This document shows, piece after piece, positions 13,802 to 50,001 of a DNA stretch of 64,000 bases; within the stretch, counting starts at the first letter, position 1, and every line of letters begins with the position of its first letter. Location: the sequence record NC_048747.1; one strand, given 5' to 3'. The notes below the pieces were generated by a model. That model was not told the origin of the DNA. It saw only the letters and a list, made by a program, of their open reading frames with translations, and ran no database searches. The position numbers and the translations under genes were made by a program.

Positions 13802-14593
13802 TTATCTTTTAGGTTTCTTTAACCAACCTTTGAATCGATTAGATTGGTTTTTAATTAATAACCTATCATCGACTTCACTCTTATCGATTACCTCCACTTT
13901 ACAGTTATTGCAAGTTTTATTTTCATCTTTAGCCGCTAAATAAGCATGAGTCATCCGGTACTTCTTACAATCAACTTCACCTGAAATGATGAATTTGTGG
14001 TTGAGGAATTGACCCCCTTTAACAACTTCACAAAGGTAATAAACCCGAGGAACAGAGAAGCTACCTAGTTCATCTATAGCGTGGTGAGTGTTACCTTTTT
14101 GAGTACACCACTCGAGGTTAGCAAAGAAATTATGTTGTTTATCTAGGTCTTTATGATTGACCAGCAACTTAGTTAAAGGTTTGTTTGTATAGTTACCTAC
14201 AAACATGCATGCGACGGCACGATGGATGCGAATGTTCCTACCTGAAATAGTATCGTTATGTCTCAAGTAATCACCTTTACCTCCTTTCGTCGACCCTTTG
14301 AGAAAGTTACCACTCTTTGAGTTATACACTCTACCGTGACTACTTATAAACAGATGAGGGGATTCAAAGAAACCTTGACCTCTTTTACCCTTTTTGATAA
14401 AATCCCACTGATAGTGACGCTCCCACAGTTCAAAATCCGGATCTTCCTTTATCTTAGATAGAAGAATTGGATATAGAAACGTGGGCCGACTATAGTGAGG
14501 AAGGCTCTGATAAAGATCGAACATATCTTTGTTGAGAAGATCTCCCACCAAATTATGTTGATCAATAAATTCATCTAAGTCCATATAACTCAC
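13802..14593 (-). CDS. Free-standing HNH homing endonuclease (HNH_3 type with NUMOD4-like N-region)
   Basis: ISSHGRVYN...GDYLR; IHRAVACMF; VNHKDLDKQHNFFANLEWCTQKGN. Confidence 0.88.
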   Translation of the reverse strand: MSYMDLDEFIDQHNLVGDLLNKDMFDLYQSLPHYSRPTFLYPILLSKIKEDPDFELWERHYQWDFIKKGKRGQGFFESPHLFISSHGRVYNSKSGNFLKGSTKGGKGDYLRHNDTISGRNIRIHRAVACMFVGNYTNKPLTKLLVNHKDLDKQHNFFANLEWCTQKGNTHHAIDELGSFSVPRVYYLCEVVKGGQFLNHKFIISGEVDCKKYRMTHAYLAAKDENKTCNNCKVEVIDKSEVDDRLLIKNQSNRFKGWLKKPKR

Positions 14594-29100: not shown

Positions 29101-30775
29101 TATGGAAGTGGTCACAAGCCAAACCGATAGTGAGTTTCACGTTTTCAGAGGTGGAGTCCGATAAAGCCAAACGGTAGTCGTAAGTTCCATCACTCGCCGA
29201 ACTGACGTAAGAACGCAGGTACCAGTTCTCTAAACACTGAACCACGATTCCTTCATACATCATGTTGTCGTTTAACGGCAGCGGAGTGCCGTTCTTATCG
29301 ATACCGTTCAACTTAAACGTCAACGCACGATCAGGTTCAATGAACGCAGGAATAAACGGCGTATTCACTGTCTCAGCTAATGGTACTGTTTCAGGGACCC
29401 AGTCGTTGTAATAACCAAGAACCAATTCACCTACTTCAGCACGCCAGTATTGACGTGAAACTTCAGCTTCAGCAGGAATAGTGATTTCAGCCACACCAAG
29501 GTTATCGGTTACCGCTTCACCAAACGCAGTGGTTTCATCACCTTTAAAGAACTTGACAGTCACACCCACTTTAGGGTTACCCAAGTCGTCCACTAGACCA
29601 ACACGGTTAACCGCTTCTCGACCTACATGAACAAAGTTCTTAGTGCCTACGATCAAGTTTAACATGTCACCCAACGTACTGTAGCGTGTGATGTCATCCC
29701 CTAACAGTCGACCACGACAAGTCGCAGTACATGACTTAGATCCATCACGACTACCCACCCAGCTTTCAAATGCCCAGTCACTGTTCATGTACACGTCGTC
29801 ACTGTAAGGTGAGTTGTTGTAGTCATGTAAGACTAGATAGTCAGTTGTAACATTTGGAGTTTCGTAATCCTTGGTGTAGATTCGACCTGTCATTTCCCAA
29901 GAACCACTGTAATGTAAGTCTGGGTTATTGATCATAATGCTACGAACGGAAAGACGAAATAAAGCTGGAGCTTTTAAGTCAGTCACTATAGGTGGTGCGA
30001 TTTCAGTGTAACCGTTGTTTGTCAACAGAGTCACTTTTTGCTCAGGAACCTTAGCTTTAAACTTACCACCCCACTCTAGGTGATCACTTAGATCTTTAGT
30101 GTAAAGGGCGTTATCAGAGAAGTACCCAAGATAAGCATCAGTTTCGAAGTTAACGGCACCAGAACCGTATTTAGGGAATACACGACCAACCAGTTGGAGT
30201 TCTTCACCTACTGCAAGCTCTTTAGGTGCTAACGTATCTCCAAAGAACGTGGATAAGGATTGAGTGGTAAAATCATAAACGAACTCATCGTTTAGATCAC
30301 CGTAGCTCACTCGAATGTGTAGTTTCTGTGGGTCGGTCCCATTAGCGCTCCACATGGTACCAGCATAACCACCCTCTTCAGTAGTCACTGTGCTCGAAAC
30401 CCATTCGGTGACATCATCGTATTTGTATTCGTAAGTGACATCAACACCCACGATTGGGTCCATGTTAGCGTCGACTAAACGAAGGTGGAAACCATTCATG
30501 TATTCCGTGTTGAACTTGCCGGAAGCAGGCATGATCTCCAGTTCTTTAACGAAGTCAACTTCATGTGTTCCCAAGGGTTTACTTTTATCAAAGAAAGTAA
30601 AGAGCACTTTCTTTTTACTTGCCGATTCGACTGTAACTTCCCAATTACCCTGAGCGTCTGTAACCACTTCGGTATCGGGAAGACCGTCGTCTCGTTTCAA
30701 AGTGAGATTGACGGGTCCTTCAGGATTCACCGCAACATCACCGTTTAACAAGTTTCCTCTAATAACACCCGCCAT
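23126..30775 (-). CDS. Giant Ig-like/invasin-repeat virion fibre or adhesin (2549 aa)
   Basis: Recurring ~90-100 aa beta-sandwich units with DxxG, TDxxGxA and terminal W; N-terminus homologous to the 3908-aa protein. Confidence 0.85.
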   Translation of the reverse strand: MAGVIRGNLLNGDVAVNPEGPVNLTLKRDDGLPDTEVVTDAQGNWEVTVESASKKKVLFTFFDKSKPLGTHEVDFVKELEIMPASGKFNTEYMNGFHLRLVDANMDPIVGVDVTYEYKYDDVTEWVSSTVTTEEGGYAGTMWSANGTDPQKLHIRVSYGDLNDEFVYDFTTQSLSTFFGDTLAPKELAVGEELQLVGRVFPKYGSGAVNFETDAYLGYFSDNALYTKDLSDHLEWGGKFKAKVPEQKVTLLTNNGYTEIAPPIVTDLKAPALFRLSVRSIMINNPDLHYSGSWEMTGRIYTKDYETPNVTTDYLVLHDYNNSPYSDDVYMNSDWAFESWVGSRDGSKSCTATCRGRLLGDDITRYSTLGDMLNLIVGTKNFVHVGREAVNRVGLVDDLGNPKVGVTVKFFKGDETTAFGEAVTDNLGVAEITIPAEAEVSRQYWRAEVGELVLGYYNDWVPETVPLAETVNTPFIPAFIEPDRALTFKLNGIDKNGTPLPLNDNMMYEGIVVQCLENWYLRSYVSSASDGTYDYRLALSDSTSENVKLTIGLACDHFHTEKEVVVGKVEGLNPLPYAQGTSVAGRSLVSGWRLLDAELNPVVGSIVQVWLDDKTGNADFNLTTDKYGIVHFTAPYEEGNLVRKAYAQSGDQEHVLELMWTEKQAGCDITVGIPDFVATEEQTTFNVRTLDQMGNEVNEESPQLYALGRYGLNVMAYRKSTGEIIPLGMDRTGELNITTGVEEGEQDYVIYTEAGFKEFTVNAVKRPTRNVERVPYSSSNAFPESDALVAFNVVDENNLGVPGETVEIRYLGLEVDKLIGNSWVRVYEGGSDEVIATLVTDEFGIVEYPVTTPAGTGTHGWGATRVNPGPKDAVGEAKIYVHWRDAIVTSLRDFKSIPVTESGEYSAYSTEVWENVSETEEEISDSNRYLEIYVKELNRTLYTMSDFYKGRSVGVIEEALPDGTYNAVIYTQNARHEFTITWGAVTPVVPTELNYDSFQAKKYPAGALLYSSVSLNDANGPITQITKSHKVVVYNSGGQSVGSGFVDIDGTANIRWETSWGVPKPTETYEFRIGSDVLFSMTADLVVNPQVSVAPYTLSNPVIGYPVLTGALVENEAKDGIVSGIYVTLEDGHGNVYAEGETDEFGFFDAMYERVGTESHLFVRPRCGQSTTYHTGPWVDTSVSRYIDLRFIDPPATVDSDASVFMNGMMYDQNGTPANSVSYYVYDVRNRQRVGGTSKSDGRIEPWLSDIQLGKNPIIVYSANGLAKHVVEYKKMPASAEIVSGYSETLAFDGSPEVTYQLKEADGSNYTPNDGEVVHVLAQSGRYQHRDNLIGPTGLVTVPWFSKGVGPESYVLASEDMSKAINTTSSEHVAVKSVDVFHVNDWVKSGDSAIMLVTAQDFNDSPIPNIEFRVESVTEGFEFNEVYKTDANGVGKVVIPGQPVDTYLKFQVSCGNAVSSNQSVDWSDDGRANLGTVVLDTLTNEATEDEGYPVTGKVVDGEGNGIPGVTVYVYYQTPNSPYYQEDYVDTGPDGTFSVSPWLYPGLVKLIAVNGTGFDSAEVMCKTTPLLSMSNLTIQKIHEYQSGRMSAFYTDMYGRPVEGATVEFRFDSADGELIDSAVTNEKGHAWAEVTWEQARGHNSLYCVTTDASDSSPIYPAESGDTTPVVSTFAWHNYPSFLHPEMEAVFMGKVLDQHGNPIAGEMVTYYRPNTGFRTQTFTDSFGNFKVGSGPERFDPNRKDLFGFRGKFTEIAPKWNMGTKFKAGDIKFNQPNFTEGIPYDSTITLSGTVKDTYGEMIVVGDEVVKLKARVHSEGVEIGVKEFTVSPDGTWTVDIPTPNKEVKFDVWLEDEFSNGCDHVALWAGPPKFKTLAFAPPTHDYIPEGQNHTRVLYYLLDEEGNPMPNVSINFEYKGDADTRWNYGSLDRTDADGHVDVRIQLRNSTTIELRIRAEGLTTQHTIVRTSDPVGAKLTDVYYPSSTSVDRGINGLVKLTDFNGQPIADVSNVKIGIYDLVTRETYDLKPGMLDNTNFIYNLNPPAGRHRFMQYTDAYMDYYQIAKVVEVTESDPFELIVPTQIVLSPTMSNGGLAVTSDMNVKTGLRVVDDQYRDWNATGMTTIYDATNKELLGTRTEGEVHQVEISRPLDPGLHTWRVFANYKELGTVSTFIVEGDDVLNLVPGSTVVNRVDQTAVAMFGCYSAANMTPTVGKTLNVWEVGKEGVKQTLVTDDKGLAAFDLPAQTTPGVYHYIVEYDGNQVPFDFHWVAADMVLGESFGETFFPTVWTEEEYQAFKAEVIDQNGDVVSNGVEGISVKDFDDPQMNYWYNIDGEYVRPAYFTKGKHLIGMSAGAVGETFNIFSGNATGLRTLAYAQGKGLDGQNLKVAFGLTDDAFTPINGAVVKVWLGEKSGTSHYEVTTGTYGIAEFDIPQPEGVNRTWLYAESNGHELKIPVVWAKKPTPSKFSVLTVPTTLPAGSTLEFSATFVNQDDTPDTMDSWKAPHGGVYVKANQKFVYLFSASGDHYLNIIGDLSPGTHEIVFFTLTGYEVKQITIT

Positions 30776-30880: not shown

Positions 30881-30913
30881 ATAACTCGGGTAGGTTAGAC
30901 CTACCCGAGTTAT
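30881..30913 (-). terminator. Terminator after 3908-aa gene
   Basis: ataactcgggtagg/cctacccgagttat 14-bp stem. Confidence 0.85.
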
Positions 30914-30925
30914 TGTCTTTATAGT

Positions 30926-33900
30926 TTACACGTTAAAATCGTGAACGTATTCATCCGCAACCAACATTAGTGTGGTTAGATCAATTGCTGTTGAAGTTGT
31001 AAGTTCGAAACCGGTGGCATCGTTCTTAGTCACTTCAAACGGAATTGGGATGTTCTTACTAGTGTCGTACAAACGATATTTACCGTTCATCACCACTTCA
31101 CCAGAACCGTCCACTAATTTACCAGTAACAGTAGATGTCGTGTCAATGACCGTAGCCAAATCCACTACATTCGTACCGACCGATGCACTGCTATGGTGGC
31201 GTTCCAACTTCCAGCTGAATTCTCTTCCATTCACTACACCAATGACGGTTTCCACGGTTGGGTATTGGTCCGCGGTCAGTTCCGATGTAGCCGCAGGGAC
31301 AGTAGCTTTCGCCACACCTGCTGCATCAGACGTTACTGTTGCAAACGGTTCACCCGTGGTATCGCCTAGGTAGAAGGTCACTGACTCATTAGCTACGACC
31401 TTATGGTTTTCATTCAGTGAAAGCATCGTGACCGGAGCGGTACTTAGAGCGTAAGCACGTTCCAAGCTAGGTTCCCCGATATGAACTCGGTTACCTGTAG
31501 CAAACATCACTGTGTGCTCACCCACAACGTTACCATCGTAAGTAAAGGTGTAAGTGACCGCTTCACCATCTGTGCCGTGAATCACGTTAACACTCCAGTA
31601 ACCCTCAGCGTCCAAAGCAACTTCGTAGTTCGTAGCGTCAGACGTACGAGTAATGCGAAGTACTTCACTACCAACCGGGATGTAAGGACTGCCGTTTTGA
31701 TCCAAGACTCGACCGTTAAGAGTTAAGATACGACTAGGGTATTCCGTTTGACGTTCAAATACATCAATGCCGGCATCCGTCAGAAACACTGGTTCTTCAA
31801 TCACGCTGAAGTTCCAAGTTCCAAGGTCGGTACCTGCACTGCTTAACGCATAGGTGAAGTCACCCGTCACACTCGGTGTGAAGTCGTAAGAGAACTTACC
31901 GTCCGTTCCAACATCAAAGTTGAATGTGTCACCAGTAGCCGTTGCAGTTACTGTAACAGGTTCAGTAGGAGTAAATAGTGTTCCGTACTGATCATTCAAC
32001 TGACCTGTAAGGGTCGTGGTTTTGTTTACGTAAACTCCATCAGCATGCGAGTCATCCAATGTCAATTCGGTCATTGTTGGTGCGTCACCAAAACGAACCG
32101 TGAATCGGAGTAACTCGGTAGTGTTTCGCATAACCTTGTAAGTCTGCTCACCCACTTCTGTTTCATTTACTACAAACGCCCACTCACCGTCAGGCATCGC
32201 CACCATGTTAGATATCGTCGTAGTTTCACCACGCATCGATCTCAAGTTCAAGATAGTCGTTGGTCGGAACTCTTCACCATTTAGATCCAACACCTTACCT
32301 TTAATAAGCAGGTCTTGACCAAGTGGATTGTAATCAGGGATTACACTGGTCACCTTAGCACTTACAGGTTCGATCGGATCAATATCACTACTCCATCTGA
32401 TTGGCATCACGATGCGATCGTTTTCTGTACTAATCATCATCTCAGTGATGACTGTTGATCCCGCATTGCCTTGGAAGACAATCTCATCACCTGGGTAGTC
32501 CAGGATAGTAAGTGGGCGTTCAACACGAGACTTAGGATCGTACAGAGCAACACGAGGATTAGTAATCACATCACCGTTTTGGTCATGGACTGTCATGCGA
32601 CCTAGGAATTTCTCTAAGTACACCACATCCTGCATGTTGTCAAAGTTCACGATCGTTTGACCGATCAATTCACCGTCAACCCATTCCACGTTCCAAGTAG
32701 CTGACTTACCACCAACACTCACGTAGACAGTATGAACGCCAATGCGATCGACACCACCATCAGTGCCTGGTAGGGTGTAGGTCACGACGCCTTGGTCATC
32801 TGTGTTGAGTTTAGCAATAACCTCACCTGTCGCATTACCCCATCGAGCGGTAACTGGTACGTCTTTGATTCTTGCACCGTTAGACGCTAGTACTGTGAAA
32901 CTAGCGCTAGCATCAACACCTGTTGGCGCTTTAGTAGAAGACAGTGACATTGTTTCTATCTCACCAATCGGTGGGATTTCCACGTCCCAAGTAATCTCCT
33001 CATAACGCTCGGCGTTGCCAACGTAAAGAATCAAACGATGTGTTCCCGTAGGCAGAGGTCCCACATTTAACTCAAACCCAGTTTCATCGTTCTTAACAAC
33101 TGTAGAGTCTAGGATGGCACTGCCGTTTAAGTGGTACACTTGGAGGTTGCGGCCCGGCAATACGTTACTGTTTTGATCCAACAGTTTACCAGTGATAGTA
33201 GCTGGTTGACCGTAGTCAACAGGGTCAGTAGTAACGATATCCGCAAAGGTCCGTCCCACCAATTCATCCACAGGTTTCCAGTTAACTGCCGCATCCAGTA
33301 CCGATGTGCCGTTCTTGAAGTAAACCGTTGTAATACCAGCCTCAGCAGGAGCAGGGACTAACATAGCGGCAATACCCAGTTCATCGGTTGTTGCCGTAAC
33401 CACAGCTGGACTGTTAGGATCACCCAAGTGTGCAGTGACTTCAGTACCTGCCACAAACGAGTCGGTTTGATCAGTAACACGGACAGCCATTGTCGCCGGC
33501 TGACCAATCGTTGCCACATTCGCTGAGTATGGCATTTCAGCCAAGATGTTATCCGGAGTAACAATCAGTGAATGGGTAGCTAAGTAACCACCATCAGAAC
33601 CAACAATGTCGATTTCGTACGTTCGGAACTCAGAGAAGTAAACTTCCACAGAGAACGTGCCATTAGTACTGATGGATCCACTGAAGGTGTCACCGTAGTT
33701 ACTGTAGGCTGTACAAGACGTGTTAGAAGAAGGATTAACTGGGTTGTTGTCGCTATCCAAGAAAGTACCATGGATAGTTACGCGACCACCACCGCGTGTC
33801 ATTCGCTCCACACTGTCATCGATCACACCACGTTTGATATCACGGTTGCTAACACTCCAAACCAACAACTTAGTAACCACCCCGCCATCAGTAAAGATGT

Positions 33901-39900: not shown

Positions 39901-42652
39901 CAAACTCATCAGTGATTACTGAACCGTAGTGAGTGTCATCGTTCTTGTACTCCACCAACATCCCTGGAATGCCGTTACCATCCACATCCTTAACCACAGT
40001 AGCTAACATCGCCTCGTGAGTCTTAGCGACTTTGTCACCAGTGTAGTCGGTGAAAGTAACCGTAGGAGTTTCATGGAAATCGATCTGATGAACATAGAGG
40101 TTTGTTCCGCTATGCAGGATGTTGTAAGACTTAGTCTTAGCGATGGTGGAGTTCGCAGCGAATGACCAAGACCCATCAGGTTTAACCCTAACGTGGATTT
40201 CTGAGCCAGTTTCATCACGAACAGTTAAACGCATTCCAGCGGTAGGTCGGATCACACTACCGTTCTCATCCACAATCTTACCCGACACAATAGCGTCACT
40301 TCCTACTACACCAGAGGTAGGTGATAGGAAGTCAAGTAGTACTGAGGTAGGGTTGATTACCGGATACGCACCCCAAGTCAATGACATGCGTTCCTGAGCG
40401 TTTCCTGAATGGAATACAACGTCGTAAGTCCCGTCTTCCATTGTTGGGAATTCCGCAGTGTAGGACCCGTCAGCATTTTCATAAATGGTAGCATTGTAAG
40501 CACCAATCTGGAAATGATCTATCGGAGTCACGTAAACGCCACGGTCCGCCATTGGTTGGCCGTCTTGGTTTAAAGGACGGTAGGTGTAAACCAGTTCACC
40601 ACCAGTATTAATGGTCGGGTTGTAATCCAAGTCACTAAACCCTGATATTACATCAGAACCTTCCAACCAAGTAATGTCAGTTCTAACTACGTTAGGGCCG
40701 ACCACCATCGTGATGGCGTAGTTGCCGTTTAAGGTAGTTTCATTGACTGAAGCCGGGATGTTGAATTCCGCAATACCGTTAGCGTCAGTTAACTTAGTTT
40801 CCAGTTCAACGTCGGTCACACCAGGGCCATTGATGTAAGCTGTCGCAGGAACACCGACAACAGGAACCAGTAACCCGTCTTCTACGATACTTGCACGGAC
40901 TGCCACAATAGCGTCGTCACCAACATAAGCGTTAGGGTATGTGGAGTAGTTCATGCGTTCGGTGCGAAGACCATCAGGGAAACCAATGGACCAATGTGTG
41001 CGTTTCTCAGAGATGATACCTGAAGAACCTAAGACGAGGTCGTGTTGACCTTGTGACAAAGGACCATACTCAAAAGAGAACGTACCGTCACTTCCGATAA
41101 GAGAAGCGTCGAATGCTTGATGTGTTAAGCTCTGTTTATCAAACACACCCAATCGAGGTGGTTTAAATGCACTTCCACCTTGGTCGTAGACTTGCCCTGT
41201 TACAGTGATAGGAGTCTCAGTATCACCTTGTGTTGGGATATCCAAGTTACGGAACTCAGAAGCCACAGGAGCGCCAGTGAAGGTAACTTTGTGATTCACA
41301 CTAGCAAACCCACCGATACTACACAACACGAATGTTTCATTCTCACCTGAAGCACGACTTACTTCTACTTCAACGATACCAAATTCGTCAGTAACCTCAA
41401 CTTGTTCAGATGCATTGGTTCCAGGGTTAACGAGAGTAAACCCGCCAGTCACTGGCTTCTCTTCATCATCAACAATAGCGAACGCAACTGTGCCCTTGCC
41501 CAAGGTAGGGAGGGTATCCACTGAGTATTCACAAAGTTTTACACTACCATCAACGACGTAAGCCGGATGCTCTGCCAGAACTTCCGCGTCACCGTTCTTA
41601 ATGGTGTATTGGTAGACGTCACCGTTTTTACCAGAAACAGGATAACCGAATTTACCATTAGGCCAAACCAAAGATTGTATCGAATCTTCGTTTCTCTCAA
41701 CGGTCATGTAAACTACGCCGTGAGGCTTATAGTCCACACCATCCACTTGAACTGTCGCTTCCAGCGTTGACCACATGTTTACAAAAAACTTGGTCGCTGT
41801 CGGGTAATGGCGCTTTACTGTGTTAATGGTTTCTTCTTGGAAGTCCCCACATTCAACAACAAACTCACGGTATTCGGATTCCATTGCAAACACAAAGTTG
41901 TGATTACCTTCAGATAACCCCGCGACTGTTAGGAATACGTTGTTGGTTAAGTCATCAGAGATCTCGGTGTAAGTGACCTCAGTCAGAGTGTCTTTATTAA
42001 AAAGAACTTTAGGTGGGTTGTAAATTAACGATCCCCAAGGGTCATTACCACCGCCCATGACTAATAGTTCATTACCCAAACCTAATTGCTCAGTGTAATG
42101 GAAGTTAGCCATTGAAATAGCAAACTCTTCTTCCCCATCTTCGTACTGAACACCCCAAAACGCAGTAGTGCCTCCAGACTTAGCCCAGAACCCCACACGT
42201 TCATAAACGTTGTGAGGCGGAACCGTATAAGTGACGATACCAAATTGGTCAGTCCTTAGAGTTGTCACTGGTTCAGAAGTTTCTTCACCACGGTGGATAG
42301 TGACGTCAGCATAAGGGATGCCATTTCCATCAGGGTCTTTAACGGCAAATGCAATAGAAGCACTCTTGTCCATCAAGACTCTTGAGTTAGAATAAGGAAG
42401 TGCTACTGTTTCAGCAGTCTCGTAGAAACGAACCGCATGCGCACCTACATCAACCCCATTGTAAATAAAAGTGAAGTCGACCGTTGAGTCGACTTCAGCG
42501 TTAACTTCGAATGACCATTCGCCATCGGCGTTGGTCGTGATAGTCACATCAGGTAGGCCGTCCGATCGGACGGCCTTTAATGTGACGGGTTTACCCGGAA
42601 CCACTAGATCACCATTGGCATCTAGGAGAGTTCCCTTGATAATACCTGCCAT
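30926..42652 (-). CDS. Giant Ig-like/invasin-repeat virion fibre or adhesin (3908 aa)
   Basis: Roughly 40 beta-sandwich units in recurring A-B-C order (GxxxDxxG; TDxFGIAxF; DGTFSxxxGP). Confidence 0.87.
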   Translation of the reverse strand: MAGIIKGTLLDANGDLVVPGKPVTLKAVRSDGLPDVTITTNADGEWSFEVNAEVDSTVDFTFIYNGVDVGAHAVRFYETAETVALPYSNSRVLMDKSASIAFAVKDPDGNGIPYADVTIHRGEETSEPVTTLRTDQFGIVTYTVPPHNVYERVGFWAKSGGTTAFWGVQYEDGEEEFAISMANFHYTEQLGLGNELLVMGGGNDPWGSLIYNPPKVLFNKDTLTEVTYTEISDDLTNNVFLTVAGLSEGNHNFVFAMESEYREFVVECGDFQEETINTVKRHYPTATKFFVNMWSTLEATVQVDGVDYKPHGVVYMTVERNEDSIQSLVWPNGKFGYPVSGKNGDVYQYTIKNGDAEVLAEHPAYVVDGSVKLCEYSVDTLPTLGKGTVAFAIVDDEEKPVTGGFTLVNPGTNASEQVEVTDEFGIVEVEVSRASGENETFVLCSIGGFASVNHKVTFTGAPVASEFRNLDIPTQGDTETPITVTGQVYDQGGSAFKPPRLGVFDKQSLTHQAFDASLIGSDGTFSFEYGPLSQGQHDLVLGSSGIISEKRTHWSIGFPDGLRTERMNYSTYPNAYVGDDAIVAVRASIVEDGLLVPVVGVPATAYINGPGVTDVELETKLTDANGIAEFNIPASVNETTLNGNYAITMVVGPNVVRTDITWLEGSDVISGFSDLDYNPTINTGGELVYTYRPLNQDGQPMADRGVYVTPIDHFQIGAYNATIYENADGSYTAEFPTMEDGTYDVVFHSGNAQERMSLTWGAYPVINPTSVLLDFLSPTSGVVGSDAIVSGKIVDENGSVIRPTAGMRLTVRDETGSEIHVRVKPDGSWSFAANSTIAKTKSYNILHSGTNLYVHQIDFHETPTVTFTDYTGDKVAKTHEAMLATVVKDVDGNGIPGMLVEYKNDDTHYGSVITDEFGIAEFTIPFNLETIVSPTVEQDYVVAHISDTISDDVTVRWAGDDENSAIEIIDLVVDSDVYEGTTATITGRLIGSLGTNDNAWMWLTVFNKTTLESKMFNNNIMLDGTFEIEVGPYPMGLNQLVIATNSYTTPISLEVTEAPIVLKELRTLPYSTTKVKSAGSATLAFAAINSLDKGMVGETVELRLASDTGILLDSVVTDQYGIAEFTILDNETTPNTGDVTYVAVSGGFSAQSIVSWGETGVVIESLGGFEATGLVSSGAKGVIKLSPLSKLVYDSGSFAQDPNGKLTPWETMSHVRGATINVFDKVTLSAVPHNRVNADVNVGGEKFDIYTVDALPDGFYDLVVYSDNTIETATMTWDAETELAKPDRFTLTNSITTAFVQNDTNQWLDGDVQSTSGPTFELTGYVEPVMAGAQEHPVWITPKGRFVTKLSEPRSEGVHSYDFKVDGAVVDTKTITFYDSLNVTLLPYTTPNPVKGKAATVAAVVKDGSGRVVPDACVTLTPGARITYEHLVNLNSDFNGSVEMTWEYDEAYPEFTLITGCNGKRNGETQLLRWVESPELTGDSFETLVVPEKVVGDNKATITGKILDQEGNPYANGELLVYNKITMTSTDLTTAIQPDGTFSTELGPYPFNAYELIFATRGNVDRRTTVWGGSGILASITIDPESGTRGLLGDTVAIFGTSTDTIGTPFIPDEGSYALSVTNDKNDEVLPVVIDGMSNWNFNASHDVEETITYTFKDGETALATHSVEFFVGAGTLRNFDFGSSPKTASLDETFTLTGKVFNTSNELYKPISEEAFTLRLDETTDFLGTIHTDGTFSVVVTNDVVETKTYTFEYLETDYETVDVRWCETLTLSFNGDSQPKAVVGDDAYVSIKVVDENGIAPEGREIEFYEGDTSGTPLYAEEITSNSYIGYWPAEATVEGDVTIIAKLGERETTMTLTWVGNEPKIAAGFGRKTTLVGYVVDKKPASGTTSTLRGTVVDQDGLPLAGPQMLKVFDQGSSDLTDYSAQVQADGTFDIELPAQPDGTYNYSLVTEGNVGLIGGLTWDAANEDLKTVKLDASVPTQVNVASTHTLQGTILDSLGSVIAPAESITVYVNSSESSTYEFTVTPDGTWSFAYTFSNAGDVLFDFHTYEGKYLGSITIAVEAAPPQFTSIEWVGEQPAEGMVGEPVKLTAVSLDQYGDPIEGVSVRPFINGEPQNAFRSPPGGSWSLDYTSNEAGPVLYEFGWEPGVPRIGHTVVWKLPVSSIESLRYSDSNAVPGQDAFASFAAVNAEGQGIAGVPITVHLDTTDGPELATVVTDADGIAEFNIPQKGTDSSRLVYAKYDSVVKERRQWWANDATATATGFANFSVTSPVPNGERASVSVQTVNKDGLVLPLASVGIFDRTTLDQIAFNKVSTGESKSFILDFAGSGAKDYVLVTDAGRMNFSVTWDDSAKITPDGVTFDADSPDAVVINEWAEISGRFTVAGTPVTKLNSYVKATVTVDGVESNLAVDQDTGAFSAMIRPTVEGQGTYTFKVDDVVIATKIFKHVDTVTFSDMDVLSVTAPKVYEPAEVGVVVKDGSGNSIPGVMVTWSVVGESEPRGITKADEDGIALFSIPHVLGVTTVDVVAEVNSVTSTVTVAWKPSNEPSDVSFETLTVPSEIYDLEVATITGKIVNQSGEGIATTKFDVYHRDMLTYTSHSTEVQADGTFSFDIGPFDIGVNSFYFCINGKREAREITVVERTTPKLSTVELDESNPTEGNSSEVLTVSGTGYDQYGEVFPNGSLQWSIGGEIQAPLTTSGDGTFSVQVTNNTDGPVVYSFGGNDDIPVKELTINWIILVTHTMSFAGTSKIVQPQGDSSRVELFVKDEDGLGVENASIVLTDQDSGATLATIKTGSRGTASHYVAYEAGNNVRTIVASYEGLTETLELTWVESTTKFAAGFDRLYVDTRPASGKSTTIRGQLVDQNGDPITTATTLGVFNGNNLDNIDYISALQPDGSFEFEYGPAADGNYNTYIFTDGGVVTKLLVWSVSNRDIKRGVIDDSVERMTRGGGRVTIHGTFLDSDNNPVNPSSNTSCTAYSNYGDTFSGSISTNGTFSVEVYFSEFRTYEIDIVGSDGGYLATHSLIVTPDNILAEMPYSANVATIGQPATMAVRVTDQTDSFVAGTEVTAHLGDPNSPAVVTATTDELGIAAMLVPAPAEAGITTVYFKNGTSVLDAAVNWKPVDELVGRTFADIVTTDPVDYGQPATITGKLLDQNSNVLPGRNLQVYHLNGSAILDSTVVKNDETGFELNVGPLPTGTHRLILYVGNAERYEEITWDVEIPPIGEIETMSLSSTKAPTGVDASASFTVLASNGARIKDVPVTARWGNATGEVIAKLNTDDQGVVTYTLPGTDGGVDRIGVHTVYVSVGGKSATWNVEWVDGELIGQTIVNFDNMQDVVYLEKFLGRMTVHDQNGDVITNPRVALYDPKSRVERPLTILDYPGDEIVFQGNAGSTVITEMMISTENDRIVMPIRWSSDIDPIEPVSAKVTSVIPDYNPLGQDLLIKGKVLDLNGEEFRPTTILNLRSMRGETTTISNMVAMPDGEWAFVVNETEVGEQTYKVMRNTTELLRFTVRFGDAPTMTELTLDDSHADGVYVNKTTTLTGQLNDQYGTLFTPTEPVTVTATATGDTFNFDVGTDGKFSYDFTPSVTGDFTYALSSAGTDLGTWNFSVIEEPVFLTDAGIDVFERQTEYPSRILTLNGRVLDQNGSPYIPVGSEVLRITRTSDATNYEVALDAEGYWSVNVIHGTDGEAVTYTFTYDGNVVGEHTVMFATGNRVHIGEPSLERAYALSTAPVTMLSLNENHKVVANESVTFYLGDTTGEPFATVTSDAAGVAKATVPAATSELTADQYPTVETVIGVVNGREFSWKLERHHSSASVGTNVVDLATVIDTTSTVTGKLVDGSGEVVMNGKYRLYDTSKNIPIPFEVTKNDATGFELTTSTAIDLTTLMLVADEYVHDFNV

Positions 42653-42662
42653 TTAATATTTC

Positions 42663-45600
42663 CTATTTCGTGATTAAAGCCACACGGTTGGAACTTTCAT
42701 CGATTCCTACCGAAGTGAAACTAACGAAGTCAGGATCCCAAGTCACGGCGTGCTCGGAGATTTCTGCGCCAGCATACACTACTAAATGATGGACACCTTG
42801 GTCAAGAGGACCGAGCTGCACACTAAAAGTACCGTCTGCGTTAACAGCGTTTTGGTGGAAAGTATGAGTGGACTTATCGTAGATACCCACCTCATTGTAA
42901 TTGGTGAGGGCACCTGATTTGTCGAGTGTATCACCCACAACTTCAACTGCATCCGCTAGAGCTACCTTGTCAGGCACTTCTAGATTACGGAATGTAGTTG
43001 CCACTTTAACACCGTCTTCTACCCAAGTCAGGTTGTGTGCCGCAATAGGAACGGTTTCACCCAGTATACCGGTGACTGCATCTTGACTTACCTCTGCACT
43101 GTACGGAAGTGTTAGATGAACAATACCAAATTCATCCGTTGTCAACTTCCTAGGTGGGTTATCAAGACCAGGGTTGCCGACACCCACTAACACATCACGA
43201 TACTGAATAGGTTGATCGCCGTCTTGTTTGTAAACCAACCAAACCTCACCAGATTCACCTTGCGGCACTTCACTGTATGAGTATGGGGTGAATCCCACAG
43301 ACGCTTGTTCTACCCATTCGATCTCAAGAGAGTCATCGATGGTTGCCGCAGGGTCACGGTACAATGAGTAAGTCAGCACACCTCTTGATGCATTAGTGAT
43401 CTCTAACATCACTGTACCATCTTGGTAGATGTTTGCATCCGCATGAGGACCTTCATCCGTCGTCACAGAAAGTGTCTCTGGAGCACGCGGTGTATATAGC
43501 TCACCATTAGCTTGGTAGATCTTACCTCGGAACGGGAAAGTTTCACCAGCAACTAACACACTAGGTGAACTTGAAAGATCCCACTCAATGTACGCACCGG
43601 TAATATCTGGGGCAGCCCATTCGACCGTATGAAGTTCGTTGTTCACTTCGTTGTAAAGCACGATGTCTTTAGTAACGAAAGTCTCGCTGGTCATGTACGC
43701 TGTGAACTCGCCCGTAATAGGGTCTAGTCCGCGGATAGAAACAGGGATGTGTTCGAACGTGTTGCGATCGTAACCACCCAGTCTAATGCCCGTGTTAACG
43801 TCATCTGGAATTAACGGGTCACCGTTTTCATCCAGCATTACACCAGTGAATAACAACTCTCTTCCGTAGGTAATCGTAGGTACAGACATTTGCGTCATGG
43901 TGACACTGATACCAGTCTCATCACTCCAATCCACAACGACTTGAGCTTCTTTCAGACCTAGTGAGGCAAAGAATGCGCCGTGCTTCTCGTCTTCTAAGTA
44001 AGGAGCTTCATAAGTCGCAATACCAAACTCATCCGTAACGATGGTTCCTAGTTGACGTTCAGGTGAATAGATGGTTGCCATTTGACGAACATCTAACTCC
44101 ACGCCCGGTTTACCTTTACCCGCTTCATCCAACACGTACCAACCAATGATGCGGTTCATACCGTAAGGAACACGGAACAGAACGTTATCAGAAGGAAGTG
44201 CGGACAATGTAATCTCGCCAGTGAAGTTAATGGTGTAAGAACCCACAGCACGGTTGTTCGCAGAGAACGTGTAAGTAGTGCTACCCGTTTTCTCACCAAC
44301 AGCACGGTAAGTCCATGTGCCATCGCCTGGAGATTGAGCTTTGTCTGTTTTACCAGCATACTCAACGTCGAACTCAAACGGTACTCCCGGAAGGTAAGCT
44401 TCACCATGTTGGTCGACAGTATTACCGCTAAGCGTCAGAGGAATACCCACTTCACCATCTACCGGCAAACCTTCATCGAAAGTCAGCTGAGCTAGTCGAG
44501 GTGGTTCACCCATCCAACGAATCATGTGACTGCCTTGGTTGCCGTTTTCTAGACGGAACACAAACGTGGTTTCTTCCCAGTCACCGTAAGGACCTACTTC
44601 AGCTTCAAAGCGTCCGTCGAATCCTGCGTAGATGATCGTTTCTTCGGCGTCATTCAACTCTTTCATGTAAACCGGGGTACGGCTTTCACTAGTGAAGTTG
44701 TTACCTTCTTCATCAACCAATTGGCCCGCAATACGAACACTAGTGCCGGCTGGTGCCTCTGGTGCGTTATCCGGACTCATGACAATGTCAAAAGCTACCT
44801 TAGGCGCTTCAGACCATTCCACTGTACCGAATGAGAAATCGTTCTCAGTCCAGACCACCACTTGGTAACTCATCCCCGGTTCTTTAGGAGAACCCGTTAA
44901 CTCGTACTTGCCGTTCTCAACCGATAGCGTATCCGCGTAAGCAGCCCACAAAGGACCGTAACCAACTTTAACTGGCACACCAACTACTAAGTCACCGTAT
45001 TGATCGTAAACACGACCTGTGACCGATAGAGGTTCTTCACCAACGAAAGCCATGTCTTCCACATCAAGCATGACACGGTCACCATACGGTTCCGTCTCTA
45101 CCCAACGCAGTAGATGTTCTTTACGACCGCCCATGGTTGCGATATGGAACGTAGTACGATCTTGACCTTCCTTACGGATACGAGTAAGTAGGAACTTACC
45201 TTGTTCATCCGTAGTTTCACGACGAATGGAATCCAAGTCGTTGTCAACAAAAGAGAAGAACTCAGTGTCTCGCAGTGGAGTGCCTTCTTCATCCAGTAAT
45301 TGACCGTACGCTCGACCCGCTTTGTTGATGCTCGCCTTAGTTGGTGTATAAGGGAAGAACTCACCAATTTGTTGTTCAGGGTTAGTCGTGATACGAATGT
45401 CTTTACTTAGGAAGTATTCTGGTTCCTCACCCGCTACTTCAAAATCAAATTCAAAGGTCTCAGTAGAACCACTAACACGTTCAGACCATGTGAAGAAACG
45501 GAACGTACCATCTAAACCAATGTCGACTTTACGAGGTGCTGAATCGTAGATCACACCACCTTTAACCAACATCTTAGTCAGACCGTCTGTTACCAACGCA

Positions 45601-47447
45601 CCTTTCTGGTCGTAGACACGTCCAGAGAACTCGATGATTTGCATTTCACCGATGCTGTTAGGTACCGAACTGTCAAACTCGATAGTAGTTGGAACTGGTG
45701 TTTCTGTATCTGGACCTTCGGTGACATCAATAGAGATACCGGTAGTAGCCAGAATCAAACGATCACCCTGAATGGATTCGTGAATCCATCGAACGTAGAT
45801 GGTACGACCTTGAGGCTCCTGGACATCCAAATACATTTTCTCAGCGTAACGACTGATTTCGTACTCGTACGTTTTACCCGAACTTGCCAATACTTCGAAG
45901 TGAGTAGGACGAATAGGACCTTTCTCACGCTGTGGGTTGAAACCCGGTTCGATGGCATTGTACGTTTGCTCTAACCAATCTTCCATGTCATCGTATTCAC
46001 CACCAAAGATGATTTCTTGACGACCGTCTGCTTGGTTAACCGCTTTAAACGTAGGGTCTGAGTAAGAAGCCTGGTCGTAAGAATAACGAACGTCAAACTT
46101 ACTACCTGGTTCTGTACCCGGTGTCTTCAACACGAATGTCGTAGACTGACGCATGATCATCGGTTTGAACGTAGGGACTACGTCACTTAAACGACAGTTC
46201 AGCTCCAGCGTTTGTTCCACACCATAAGTGGTAGGACGGAAAGCTGGTGACAGTTCGTTAATACGAACGTGATCGGTCGCATCGATCATGAAGTTGCGGT
46301 CTAAATCCGTTAGGAAGTGTTTCAGGATGTATTGACCGTTTACCCAAGTCGGATAAGAGTAAAGCTTAGGAGAGTAAGCGCCGTCAAATGGTACTGCCAG
46401 CATCCAGTAAGAATCACGGAACTGGTTAGGATTACCCGGTTGTGCTTCGTAGATGTACTCATCCGAATCCAAGTTGTAAACCAAAGTCAACGTACCGCGC
46501 TGACTAGGTGTAGATGGTTTGTGTTCGTTCAACCCAAGTAGTTGGATTTTTTGACCATCAATGCTCAACTCGTCTGACTTAGAACCATCACTGTAGTGTA
46601 CCACTGCACGGAACGCTAAGTTCTGTAACATGGTGTTGACTGGAACGTTCAGCGTTTTAGGGTCACTGGTGTTCAAGAACCAAGGAGCGACAAGTTCCAC
46701 ACGAGTGATGTAACGTTTACCAACTTGGTGGTCACGCATCATCGCGGTGTGCTGAACTGACAGTGTACGGGCTTTAGGAATCACGTTACCGTTGATATCG
46801 TGCCAAACCAAAGTACAACGGGCACCGTCTGGCAGTTCATCGGGGTTACGGTTCACAGAGAACGGCTGAGTAATCATGATCTCTTTATTGCTGAGCTCAT
46901 GGTACGCCGCTAGTGTAACCGGAACACGGTTCGATACCAACTGGTTGTTGTTAGAGTACACAACAGAGATAACTTTACCGTCATCCCCTACGGTGTTACC
47001 TTCGTACAACAACGCGTATGCTGCACCCGGAGCCATGACCTGACCATCGATTACAGCACGGTTAGGACGGACTGAATAGTCAATCGCAACAACGGCTTCA
47101 CCTTGGAATCCAGAAGGAAGTCCAAAGATACCATCCGCACCACCTTCACCTTCACCGTTATCGAAGATAGGTTCCAGTGTAGATTTTAAGTCTGATTCCC
47201 AGTTAACGTGAGTGACCACGTAGTTCTTTTCTGCGATAGGATCAATCACGACTTCTTTTTCTCGGGGAACTACATAACGATGCGCTTCACCCGGTTTCAC
47301 TGTATCTGGATCATAAATCTCCCAGATATAGTGCATACGCCCACGGTCACTATCATTAGGGAGCTGTGGACCAGCTCCCGGAATGACGGATGACTGAGAG
47401 GGACTTTTTAAATCTTTCTCAAACATGTTTAACCTCAAAGTGTCCAT
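42663..47447 (-). CDS. phiKZ gp26-like virion protein with C-terminal Ig-like repeat extension (1594 aa)
   Basis: Synteny terL-gp26-gp27-gp28 / sheath-tube; non-repetitive N-terminal ~580 aa then about 10 Ig-like units. Confidence 0.75.
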   Translation of the reverse strand: MDTLRLNMFEKDLKSPSQSSVIPGAGPQLPNDSDRGRMHYIWEIYDPDTVKPGEAHRYVVPREKEVVIDPIAEKNYVVTHVNWESDLKSTLEPIFDNGEGEGGADGIFGLPSGFQGEAVVAIDYSVRPNRAVIDGQVMAPGAAYALLYEGNTVGDDGKVISVVYSNNNQLVSNRVPVTLAAYHELSNKEIMITQPFSVNRNPDELPDGARCTLVWHDINGNVIPKARTLSVQHTAMMRDHQVGKRYITRVELVAPWFLNTSDPKTLNVPVNTMLQNLAFRAVVHYSDGSKSDELSIDGQKIQLLGLNEHKPSTPSQRGTLTLVYNLDSDEYIYEAQPGNPNQFRDSYWMLAVPFDGAYSPKLYSYPTWVNGQYILKHFLTDLDRNFMIDATDHVRINELSPAFRPTTYGVEQTLELNCRLSDVVPTFKPMIMRQSTTFVLKTPGTEPGSKFDVRYSYDQASYSDPTFKAVNQADGRQEIIFGGEYDDMEDWLEQTYNAIEPGFNPQREKGPIRPTHFEVLASSGKTYEYEISRYAEKMYLDVQEPQGRTIYVRWIHESIQGDRLILATTGISIDVTEGPDTETPVPTTIEFDSSVPNSIGEMQIIEFSGRVYDQKGALVTDGLTKMLVKGGVIYDSAPRKVDIGLDGTFRFFTWSERVSGSTETFEFDFEVAGEEPEYFLSKDIRITTNPEQQIGEFFPYTPTKASINKAGRAYGQLLDEEGTPLRDTEFFSFVDNDLDSIRRETTDEQGKFLLTRIRKEGQDRTTFHIATMGGRKEHLLRWVETEPYGDRVMLDVEDMAFVGEEPLSVTGRVYDQYGDLVVGVPVKVGYGPLWAAYADTLSVENGKYELTGSPKEPGMSYQVVVWTENDFSFGTVEWSEAPKVAFDIVMSPDNAPEAPAGTSVRIAGQLVDEEGNNFTSESRTPVYMKELNDAEETIIYAGFDGRFEAEVGPYGDWEETTFVFRLENGNQGSHMIRWMGEPPRLAQLTFDEGLPVDGEVGIPLTLSGNTVDQHGEAYLPGVPFEFDVEYAGKTDKAQSPGDGTWTYRAVGEKTGSTTYTFSANNRAVGSYTINFTGEITLSALPSDNVLFRVPYGMNRIIGWYVLDEAGKGKPGVELDVRQMATIYSPERQLGTIVTDEFGIATYEAPYLEDEKHGAFFASLGLKEAQVVVDWSDETGISVTMTQMSVPTITYGRELLFTGVMLDENGDPLIPDDVNTGIRLGGYDRNTFEHIPVSIRGLDPITGEFTAYMTSETFVTKDIVLYNEVNNELHTVEWAAPDITGAYIEWDLSSSPSVLVAGETFPFRGKIYQANGELYTPRAPETLSVTTDEGPHADANIYQDGTVMLEITNASRGVLTYSLYRDPAATIDDSLEIEWVEQASVGFTPYSYSEVPQGESGEVWLVYKQDGDQPIQYRDVLVGVGNPGLDNPPRKLTTDEFGIVHLTLPYSAEVSQDAVTGILGETVPIAAHNLTWVEDGVKVATTFRNLEVPDKVALADAVEVVGDTLDKSGALTNYNEVGIYDKSTHTFHQNAVNADGTFSVQLGPLDQGVHHLVVYAGAEISEHAVTWDPDFVSFTSVGIDESSNRVALITK

Positions 47448-50001
47448 TTATATTAACGCGGCTTTGCAGGAATACCTCATTAATACGTCGGATGAAGATG
47501 AGTTCCTTAGGAGTAACCGAAACCATCGTTTGTTGAACATAAGGGAATACGGCAAAGTACCGTCTATCGTAGTTGCGAGTAACGGGGTCGTGTTCTAACA
47601 ACCACTGGAACTCCGCTGTTTTACGCAATACATAGTCTTCCGAGTAAGATTCTCCCGGAGGTAGGTCATCCAGTTCGATTAAACCTAAAAGTATCTGGTT
47701 AACAATCGCATTCATAAAAGGACTGAATACTCGATACTTGTCCATCAAACTTGGAATTACTTCTGGCTCTGGTTTACGGGCAAACAACGTTAAGTAATCA
47801 CTCATACGTTTGTCTTGATCCCGGGCTTCTTCCCATCCCGCAGTCAGGTCATAAGGAACCCAATCACGAATTGGTAGATACCAGTGTTTCACACCATAAG
47901 GAAGACCATTGTACGGGTTTAATAACTCACTAGGAGCATGTAACTCCGCAGCAGGCACTTTCAGTGGATCCCAAACTCTACCACCTATAGTAGTGCGTGT
48001 TACACGGTCCTCTCGGATGTTGTAGCGGGTATTGTGACCAATCACCCCGCCCGTAACGTAGCCAAGCTCAGTTTGCTCTACAGGCTCTGTATCGCTAATA
48101 GGACTCCATTCGCTACAATAAAGTACGAAGTCGTTGCCGTCGGATTTCAGGTACTGGTGATTCACAATATAGATGTGAGGGAAACGGACCACGTAATCGA
48201 CGTTTTCAATTAACGAATGACGATTCATGATCACCATGATGTTAGCCGGAGCCACATCGGTGAGTAACCCGCCTTGCACCCATTCCTCGGTCACACTGAA
48301 AGACAACGAGTTATCGATATGGTCTAGAGTGAACTCTTTGTACAACGTTTGATCATTGTACAAGATCATCCCAATAAACATGGAACTAGGTAATCCCCAA
48401 TTCACCGCACCGGTTTCACGATCAAAGGTGTAGTGTTCACCTTCCACCGCGTAAAAACGTTCCCCAACCAAATTACCTTCAGTGGTTACCTTCTGGTAAT
48501 AAAAACGAGGGGTTGTGTTTTTATCCACCACCATGGTATCTCGACCGATATCCATGTGGATGCGTAAACCAGGTTTCCCAGGATAGAACTCAACCAAGTG
48601 TGCGTCAGGTGAAGGTAACACGTGTCGTATCTTAGAGAAGTCTCGCATTCTTAAGAACAACCCATCCACGTCATATTCAAATAACGTTAAGTGCTCTCGA
48701 CACGCTGGAGGAACGTCCAGTTCCATACCACTAGCCGGGTCGTAAGAAATAGGAGACCCACACAACACCTGAGTTGCTCGGTTATACCCAATCGCTTCGA
48801 CCGCTTGTTCGTGAGTCAACTCACCGTAAGGACGGTCTAAGTAAAGGTTAGTTTCAGCGTTCTCTAGGTTAGCTGCCTTCCACTCTTCCATCGTGGAATT
48901 AATCCCCACTAATGCCCCGACAATGTTTTGATCGTTCATGCGGTACAAATAACGAACCCCACTGGACTCGTACTGCATTTCTTGGGAATAGTCGTTTTTA
49001 CGATACACTAATCGCAAGTAACGTACTTCATCCTTTAACATGTCTTCCAAGTTACTCATGTCATCCACTAAAGTAGAATCCACAGCAAAGTCTCGGTGCG
49101 TTAACTGACGGAAGTTACTGGCTCGGTTTCTGTGTAAGTAAATCCCACGCCCTTTTCCTTCCACTAAGTAGAACGAAACGTCTGAGACGTAACGGTAAAG
49201 GAAATCCCCTTCTTCTTTCTTAGGGTGAACAATTAGTTTACGAGTTTCATCTCGGATGGAATAAAAGTTCTGTAGGGAGTCAATAGCGTAGGTTTCGGTT
49301 TTCCAGACACTAGGGTCGTTAGTGATCTCGATGGTTTCTGAACCGAGGAGTTGACTGTCACTAGGGAAACCGTTCCACAAATACCCGTTTAAATAAACAG
49401 AGGTCAATCCCGGCAGGTTTTTGTACTCGCTGTAAATGATCTTCATTCGATCTTTTTCTTCAGCACTGTTACCATTGTTAGAAGTAAAGCGAGGCCAATC
49501 TTTATTATCGGGATTGGTTACCGGGTCATACAAATCGGTTTGCACGGTATAGCAGTGCAGGTAGCGTGCTTGTTCCCAACCGTATTTGAAAGCCCTTAGT
49601 TTTTGGATAGCAAGAATGTGTTGTCCATCATAAGTAGACATCACCCAACATTTATCTCGAGGGTACAAACGACCGTCATCTCCATAGATGTCGATAATCA
49701 TCCCACGATCTTTACAGACCTTAGCTACGTTTATCCATTTGTTCACCGGGTCTACTCTGGTGAGTAAGTCTTTGAAGTTCCATGTCGAGCCGTCAAAGCC
49801 CGCCATGTTAAACATCAAAAAGTATTCTCGTTCGATCGGTGTCTTAATATAACGTCCCATAAACTGGAAGACGTTTATGTACCCAACGTCCGGGGAGACC
49901 TGCGTCAGCTGCAATTGAAACTGACGAGCCACCCCAGGGTTAGAGTACATCTCTTTAATGGCGTAACGCGCTAAGGGGCTGCTGTAGTTATTGGCTGTCA
50001 T
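47419..50001 (-). CDS. phiKZ gp27-like virion (tail/baseplate-associated) protein
   Basis: 860 aa, syntenic position; PxQxRQ-like N-terminus (NPGVARQF), GHNTRYNIREDR, YRVFSPFMNAI, FLQSRVNINGH C-terminus. Confidence 0.7.
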   Translation of the reverse strand: MTANNYSSPLARYAIKEMYSNPGVARQFQLQLTQVSPDVGYINVFQFMGRYIKTPIEREYFLMFNMAGFDGSTWNFKDLLTRVDPVNKWINVAKVCKDRGMIIDIYGDDGRLYPRDKCWVMSTYDGQHILAIQKLRAFKYGWEQARYLHCYTVQTDLYDPVTNPDNKDWPRFTSNNGNSAEEKDRMKIIYSEYKNLPGLTSVYLNGYLWNGFPSDSQLLGSETIEITNDPSVWKTETYAIDSLQNFYSIRDETRKLIVHPKKEEGDFLYRYVSDVSFYLVEGKGRGIYLHRNRASNFRQLTHRDFAVDSTLVDDMSNLEDMLKDEVRYLRLVYRKNDYSQEMQYESSGVRYLYRMNDQNIVGALVGINSTMEEWKAANLENAETNLYLDRPYGELTHEQAVEAIGYNRATQVLCGSPISYDPASGMELDVPPACREHLTLFEYDVDGLFLRMRDFSKIRHVLPSPDAHLVEFYPGKPGLRIHMDIGRDTMVVDKNTTPRFYYQKVTTEGNLVGERFYAVEGEHYTFDRETGAVNWGLPSSMFIGMILYNDQTLYKEFTLDHIDNSLSFSVTEEWVQGGLLTDVAPANIMVIMNRHSLIENVDYVVRFPHIYIVNHQYLKSDGNDFVLYCSEWSPISDTEPVEQTELGYVTGGVIGHNTRYNIREDRVTRTTIGGRVWDPLKVPAAELHAPSELLNPYNGLPYGVKHWYLPIRDWVPYDLTAGWEEARDQDKRMSDYLTLFARKPEPEVIPSLMDKYRVFSPFMNAIVNQILLGLIELDDLPPGESYSEDYVLRKTAEFQWLLEHDPVTRNYDRRYFAVFPYVQQTMVSVTPKELIFIRRINEVFLQSRVNINGHFEVKHV

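Follow-up and report, generated by a model that had tools for sequence, protein, structure and literature searches.

Vibrio phage 2 TSL-2019 (TSL2), a jumbo, phiKZ-like phage of the genus Aphroditevirus (subfamily Gorgonvirinae) with a 242-kb genome, carries two adjacent genes whose products may share a single immunoglobulin (Ig)-like domain. The window that we analysed is the 64,000-nucleotide stretch formed by bases 1-64000 of its genome record (MK368614.1 / NC_048747.1). The first product, here called the anchor, is a gp26-like baseplate protein that carries an Ig array towards its C-terminus and ends in a 23-residue tail, and the next gene encodes a giant Ig-repeat protein, fibre 1, which opens with a 77-residue N-terminal domain (N-domain). 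From gene layout, register, conservation and the strand assignment in structure models, we consider it roughly an even bet (about 50%) that the tail provides strands A and A' and the N-domain strands B to G of one Ig-like domain made from two proteins, an arrangement that would fix the fibre to the arm of the gp26-like protein.

Register of the anchor-fibre boundary

The anchor open reading frame (ORF; 42663-47447, minus strand) ends in ...SVGIDESSNRVALITK and a TAG stop, after which come the 10 nucleotides (nt) GAAATATTAA and, at 42652, the ATG of a 3908-residue ORF that begins MAGIIKGTLLDANG... (Table 1). The original prediction held that the anchor stops in the middle of an Ig unit and that fibre 1 starts at the matching next strand; both the core profile and the structure models described below place the boundary between strands A/A' and B. 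Its description of the anchor stands for the end residues and the stop codon. The length of 1594 residues, however, is that of the longest ORF, extending to 47447, and gives way to the 1587 residues counted from 47426, the start in relatives and in RefSeq; the last unit, which had been labelled a 'C unit', is a weak member of the same core family as the other units. An AGGAAA motif overlaps the anchor stop codon, which, with the 10-nt gap, suggests that translation of fibre 1 is coupled to that of the anchor.

An iterative search seeded with fibre 1 residues 1-80 yielded a core profile, which found 77-residue core copies 21 times in fibre 1 (A-type), six times in the anchor and four times in fibre 2, a second giant protein of 2549 residues. 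Successive cores are separated by gaps of 21-31 residues, most often 24-25 (normalised; 80 adjacent core pairs from eight phages). The anchor runs on for 23 residues past its last core, and fibres 1 and 2 both begin at core position 1. When tail and fibre start were aligned, each on its own, to a whole-unit profile of 104 positions, the tail took positions 2-24 and would reach ~28 with its last four residues included, and the fibre started at ~28. With the two pieces counted separately, the distance between D and the strand B G comes to 17 residues at the junction and in an internal unit alike, in agreement with the original prediction, whose quoted internal motif lies at residue 2651 of the 3908-residue protein. 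Its further claim that the 2549-residue protein (ORF 23126-30775, N-terminus MAGVIRGNLL...) starts with the same domain lacking A/A' is borne out by 41% identity to fibre 1 over the 77-residue domain.

The fibre N-domain is not a full-length Big_1 domain: fibre 1 residues 5-75 correspond to positions 21-91 of the 93 in the Big_1 profile, the first 20-23 profile positions are missing in both Big_1 and Invasin_D3 terms, and six strands are modelled, compared with eight in a full unit. Fibres 1 and 2 score 100 and 100.1 bits against Big_1, above the gathering cut-off of 34.9, and the anchor alone scores 18, below it. CarboxypepD_reg matches the fibre 1 N-domain with 20.9 bits (cut-off 32.3) over profile positions 2-49 of 82 only, and internal units of the whole protein with 48-51 bits. 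Altogether, 149 distinct repeat units were collected. The fibre genes (23000-47500) contain no DNA-level tandem repeats, which indicates that the Ig units arose by old duplications that can be recognised only in the protein sequences.

None of 18 distinct fibre N-termini carries a pre-core (inter-core) segment of its own. Moreover, at least nine fibres in relatives finish 0-4 residues from a core end, so that a dangling segment is not the default ending of such proteins. Taken together, the tail counts and the bare fibre N-termini mark the anchor tail as an extra element and the fibre start as consistently short by that same element.

We examined the boundary in seven Aphroditevirus-like genomes (TSL2 itself, PDCC-1, Aphrodite1, phiKT1019, USC-1, a Logan contig and a 244-kb metagenome contig) and in three Tidunavirus genomes, and no fused anchor-fibre ORF occurs in any of them. 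All seven Aphroditevirus-like genomes keep the 10-nt gap, the TAA before the ATG and a near-identical tail, so the check for a shared split point in relatives that had been proposed at the outset came out positive. In the 244-kb relative, fibre 1 is 29% identical overall to that of TSL2 and 70% identical over the first 77 residues. The three Tidunaviruses have an anchor of ~2480 residues, followed by an intergenic gap of ~125-130 nt before the fibre gene, and three to five fibre genes each, all with the same N-terminal domain. We considered whether the Tidunavirus anchor (2483 residues) is a fusion of anchor and fibre 1 and rejected this idea: after 1454 residues of colinearity with the TSL2 anchor it continues into further units of its own, and the Tidunaviruses keep a separate fibre 1 with the same start.

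A second boundary of this kind lies at 21100-21200 of the 244-kb relative, where fibre 1 has 23 residues past its last core and is followed by TAATAA, a ribosome-binding motif and a 1444-residue protein whose first residues belong to the A-B loop of an ordinary unit. The latter protein is without an N-domain and matches the distal third of TSL2 fibre 1, tip included; judged by sequence, one TSL2 fibre seems to be the counterpart of the two proteins combined. Only this overall match holds, as the repeats make exact colinearity of the junction with a continuous TSL2 fibre 1 unit ambiguous.

Table 1. Coordinates of the anchor, fibre and neighbouring features in the window
Feature	Coordinates	Strand	Remarks
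Anchor gene: gp26-like baseplate protein with C-terminal Ig array and tail	42663..47426	-	1587 residues, start common to relatives
Anchor gp26-like domain, residues 1-570	45717..47426	-	Common to phiKZ-like phages; tblastn, 9xqd
Anchor array of ~ten Ig-like units, residues ~585-1564	42735..45674	-	Gorgonvirinae only; core hidden Markov model matches
Anchor C-terminal tail, residues 1565-1587 (23 residues), proposed donor of strands A/A'	42666..42734	-	
TAG stop and 10-nt spacer	42653..42665	-	AGGAAA Shine-Dalgarno-like motif over the stop; in-frame TAA directly before ATG
Fibre 1, giant Ig-repeat protein, 3908 residues	30926..42652	-	Big_1 E=8.4e-29; also MG4, bMG3, CarboxypepD_reg
Fibre 1 N-domain, residues 1-77, six predicted strands (B-G), proposed acceptor	42422..42652	-	pLDDT 92-97
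Terminator-like hairpin between fibre 1 and fibre 2	30881..30913	-	15-16 bp perfect stem and T run
Fibre 2, 2549 residues	23126..30775	-	Big_1 E=7.4e-29
Fibre 2 N-domain, residues 1-76	30548..30775	-	Paralogue of fibre 1 N-domain
gp27-like DUF7193 protein	47419..50001	-	PF23823, 1062 bits

Conservation and structure models

Across its 23 codons, the tail differs from that of PDCC-1 by 10 synonymous and 4 nonsynonymous changes; in the last 12 codons, 4-5 synonymous and no nonsynonymous changes separate it from PDCC-1 and Aphrodite1. This codon pattern indicates that the tail is conserved as a peptide rather than as DNA, and the sequence comparison thus points to purifying selection on the tail peptide. 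Among seven anchors, 52% of tail columns are invariant, compared with 32% and 24% in the two preceding stretches. On the fibre side, the N-domain is the most conserved 77-residue bin in every fibre compared (94% versus 57% overall, 90% versus 24%, 70% versus 29% and 53% versus 16%), which is the usual pattern of a virion-binding module.

We modelled two single-chain fragments with AlphaFold2, using alignments of 28 units from the window. The first, comprising the pre-core segment, the last anchor core and the tail (123 residues), gave a mean predicted local distance difference test (pLDDT) score of 89 and eight strands. Its pre-core segment contributes the first two strands (fragment residues 14-19 and 23-25; pLDDT 91-96) in the absence of the preceding domain, its G strand runs to residue 100, and the 23-residue anchor tail is an unpaired coil without a strand (pLDDT 65-80). 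The second, fibre 1 residues 1-100, gave a mean pLDDT of 90 and six strands, the first from residue 2 and the G strand at residues 67-76; here the inter-core segment after the N-domain is likewise unpaired (pLDDT 68-74). In these models, the inter-core segment therefore forms strands A/A' of the core that follows it, not of the core that precedes it. On this assignment, the anchor tail would be partnerless in its own protein, and the fibre N-domain would be short of exactly strands A and A'.

Fold searches matched Ig-like domains of a generic kind (S-layer SbsC, intimin D00-D0, macroglobulin MG and filamin), and among viral models only paralogous fibres of Gorgonvirinae; the BFVD model of fibre 2 superposes at 1.3 A over 76 columns. 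Two tandem units used as a query gave no match in a sequence search of the PDB.

The proposed joint and its alternatives

The first ~560 residues of the anchor are homologous to phiKZ gp26. The anchor matches PHIKZ026 (PDB 9xqd) with E=5.7e-46, query residues 52-561 aligning with chain residues 35-544, so that gp26-like homology extends over a body of ~550 residues; the domain also matches phrog_3430 (E=2.6e-140), has tblastn matches in 290 phage records and is 38-43% identical to its counterparts in EL, Miami and Aeromonas phages, and the anchor further matches phrog_27497. The surroundings keep the synteny of gp26-like genes with gp27-like, gp28-like, sheath and tube genes, with the gp27-like DUF7193 gene directly upstream and the sheath and tube genes on the other strand. 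In phiKZ, and established for phiKZ only, gp26 is located in the outer baseplate, where each star lobe has five copies and the virion has thirty; its C-terminus inserts into gp157, gp130 and gp139, cross-linking these partners, and its partner gp27 is the core scaffold of the outer baseplate (PMC13250141). Unlike the anchor, the phiKZ protein has 552 residues and no Ig arm, and fibres of the gp131 family in phiKZ dock by a six-helix bundle.

We propose the following mechanism. In Gorgonvirinae, the gp26-like anchor is extended by an arm of ~ten Ig-like units that ends in a free 23-residue segment. Within arrays, the equivalent segment is modelled as strands A and A' of the next unit, and each giant fibre opens with a 77-residue domain that, as modelled, consists of strands B to G only. 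By laying itself onto the fibre N-domain as the missing A/A' strands, the anchor tail could hold the fibre non-covalently at the tip of the arm through a domain completed from two polypeptides. Fibre 2, in its own transcription unit past a terminator, presents the same socket and might compete with fibre 1 for the same plug. We infer binding in trans, the stoichiometry of the joint and the presence of both fibres in the virion.

We favour docking through a split domain because the register is exact (a tail of 23 residues set against gaps of 21-31, with the fibre at core position 1), because the split and its 10-nt gap are kept in seven genomes even where fibre 1 is only 29% identical, because no fibre N-terminus has its own pre-core segment, because the phiKZ gp26 C-terminus also inserts into partners and because a second such boundary exists in the 244-kb relative. 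Several observations weigh on the other side. Conservation of the tail ranks only 223rd among 985 windows in the Ig arm. When the tail was scored against the pre-core profile, 165 of 2000 shuffled sequences did as well (p ~0.08, not significant), and the likeness of tails and that of N-domains to the same internal-unit subtype do not co-vary (rho -0.06); given this weak likeness to pre-core segments, the case is one of position, length and conservation, not of sequence similarity. The fibre 1 N-domain is modelled with pLDDT above 92 (92-97) without A/A' strands, its core matches CarboxypepD_reg from profile position 2 and may thus be stable alone, and a solved 85-residue SusC domain (9hfj_A) begins at the equivalent residue. 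An R-x-D-G-x-x-D motif (unit-profile positions 56-62) is invariant in 18 N-domains and variable in 68 internal cores, and at two positions N-domains have Thr in place of the hydrophobic residues of internal cores; these sequence features could reflect adaptation to standing alone, with a different binding surface. Finally, Tidunavirus anchors hold the tail homologue internally, with ~38 residues beyond it, which complicates a simple plug.

Many of these points would be expected if the boundary were an ordinary one at a domain edge, an explanation to which we assign a substantial minority chance. The N-domain would then be a self-sufficient six- or seven-strand sandwich of CarboxypepD_reg/transthyretin-like type that docks via another surface, for example the R-x-D-G-x-x-D loop, and the tail would be a leftover linker or would bind another baseplate partner. 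The CarboxypepD_reg match, the start of the SusC domain, the confident model without strand A, the N-domain's own motif and Thr changes, and the weak likeness of the tail to pre-core segments all fit this explanation, and insertion of the phiKZ gp26 C-terminus into gp157, gp130 and gp139 offers a precedent for a tail that binds elsewhere in the baseplate. A self-sufficient N-domain, however, leaves unexplained why the tail matches the inter-core segment in length and register, why a useless 23-residue tail should be under purifying selection in every anchor and absent from chain-ending fibres, and why no fibre retains an A/A' segment of its own; the profile positions missing at the start of Big_1 and Invasin_D3 also speak for a truncated domain.

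Two further explanations concern the genes rather than the fold. Being adjacent, 10 nt apart and composed of homologous units, the two genes might be halves of a single giant gene, split recently by a nonsense or frameshift mutation or only apparently so through an assembly artefact. Yet the boundary has its own ATG, ribosome-binding motif and in-frame TAA in seven independently sequenced genomes, persists at 29% identity of fibre 1 and is flanked by tail codons in which synonymous changes have built up, and the Tidunaviruses have ~125-130 nt between the two genes; the relatives thus contradict such a recent origin, which we regard as very improbable. We give equally little credence to programmed recoding, by readthrough or frameshifting, as a source of an anchor-fibre fusion, for which the short gap and common strand might be cited. 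The fibre 1 ATG lies 13 nt past the first base of the anchor stop, so that the fibre frame is +1 relative to that of the anchor; the anchor frame is closed by TAG, and the fibre frame by a TAA that is the triplet directly before the ATG. Given this frame offset and in-frame TAA, neither readthrough nor a +1 shift can fuse anchor and fibre 1, which upholds the argument against readthrough made in the original prediction, and the layout is identical in all relatives.

More broadly, split-domain docking may not be confined to one pair of proteins. One donor type faces two acceptors in TSL2 and up to five in phiKT1028, and from these sequences it is plausible that several fibres are interchangeable on one anchor. 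In VP4B and pTD1, fibre 1 ends in a segment similar to the one at the end of the anchor; these fibre tails and the second split in the 244-kb relative suggest that one fibre could also dock onto another. A plug-and-socket system of natural split Ig domains may operate across Gorgonvirinae, in which an A/A' segment on the anchor and on some fibres completes the N-domain of two to five different giant fibres, one anchor type displays mixed adhesins, and fibres can be linked in series; we hold this wider picture tentatively, at somewhat short of even odds.

Related systems, genomic setting and implications

The proposed joint resembles donor-strand complementation in chaperone-usher pili, in that an Ig-like domain short of an edge element would be completed by a strand of another polypeptide to give a stable non-covalent fibre joint. 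Pilins lack the C-terminal G strand, for which an N-terminal extension is the donor, and are assembled with the help of a chaperone and an usher. By contrast, the element missing in the phage system is N-terminal (A/A') and the putative donor is a C-terminal tail, so that, as in a split protein, the chain would regain its native order; the modelled fibre N-domain does have a G strand. Scans for chaperone and usher Pfam families, limited to five proteins of the window, found none, apart from a chance-level CooC_C match (E=0.015). SpyTag/SpyCatcher, derived from a split CnaB2 domain, likewise reassembles a beta-sandwich from a peptide and the remainder, but is engineered and forms a covalent isopeptide bond; Pfam scans of the anchor, the fibres and the N-domain gave no CnaB match, and the fold matches are to S-layer Ig, MG and filamin domains. 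We therefore treat the anchor-fibre joint as a probable analogue, not a homologue, of pilus or SpyTag joints, so that the pilus- or SpyTag-like character suggested in the original prediction is retained only as an analogy.

Closer in setting are the DUF7941 fibres of chimalliviruses (Goslar gp22/gp23 and phiKZ gp126/gp127), for which head-to-tail joining is predicted through a flexible protomer segment that extends the beta-sheet of the next N-terminal domain (PMC13742148). These fibres belong to the same virus family, lie at the peripheral baseplate and would also be joined by an intermolecular sheet. They differ in consisting of small protomers in thousands of copies rather than giant Ig arrays, and in TSL2 the joint falls exactly inside a repeat unit. 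No DUF7941 match was found in the anchor or the fibres with a Pfam copy whose newest models date from 2025 and which may not hold a DUF7941 model. The N-terminal adaptors of phage tail fibres and tailspikes also combine a conserved virion-binding module, common to several paralogous fibres, with a fast-changing distal part; what sets the TSL2 module apart is that it looks like a partial Ig-like unit, with the absent strands on the partner protein. We found no description of a split Ig domain in phage fibres in the literature on related topics, in which no search was aimed at split Ig domains as such.

The N-domain was found in Gorgonvirinae only, among 50,697 phage records, and searches of 5.8 billion proteins, of JGI metagenomes (for the protein and for the junction DNA pattern) and of IMG/VR added no further relatives. 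In the nearest outgroups, Klebsiella phage Miami (14001-19198) and Aeromonas phage PS1 (6928-13827), the gp26-like gene encodes 571-579 residues without an Ig arm, and a DarB-like gene follows it, directly in Miami and past two small genes in PS1. This outgroup layout marks the Ig arm, together with all the giant fibre genes, as a Gorgonvirinae-specific insertion at this spot. In TSL2, the protein encoded at 19825-23037 on the minus strand (1070 residues) is named 'terminase large subunit' in RefSeq, and its orthologues in relatives are named 'DarB-like antirestriction' or 'ATP-dependent DNA helicase'; a Pfam scan gave no match, and the terminase label looks wrong.

Other details of the locus vary among relatives. 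In PDCC-1, Aphrodite1 and phiKT1019, fibre 1 stops at a core end and lacks the last ~380 residues of TSL2 fibre 1, which form the TSL2 tip (30926-32100, minus strand). The C-terminus of fibre 2 from the 244-kb relative matches this tip, for which Pfam gave no match. In phiKT1028, five consecutive fibre genes (1636, 1657, 759, 853 and 1188 residues) all have the N-domain and all end at a core end. This phage and phiKT1019 had the broadest host ranges of their isolation set (PMC10587174). The anchors of the Tidunaviruses VP4B (14300-14480) and pTD1 (27300-27461) end with the tail homologue, a short linker and a second pre-core-like segment, which leads into a strand-B-like motif ahead of the stop. 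We had considered two split points in Tidunaviruses, after A/A' and after B, with matching halves, and dropped this scheme; an alignment of all N-domains better fits a shortened hairpin after a retained first strand. The hairpin between the TSL2 fibre genes has T runs on both strands and is thus terminator-like in both directions. No tRNA genes, and no Rfam families at gathering score, were found in window positions 1-64000.

The peripheral baseplate of chimalliviruses is still largely unmodelled (PMC13250141), and no mechanism is known by which jumbo phages attach their very large Ig-repeat proteins to the virion. If our proposal is correct, a domain split across adjacent genes would be a compact sign of a physical joint, readable from sequence, that tells which protein holds which. 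It would also explain why all fibre paralogues share one conserved 77-residue start while changing quickly elsewhere, and would add a natural split-domain assembly to the known joints based on strand complementation.

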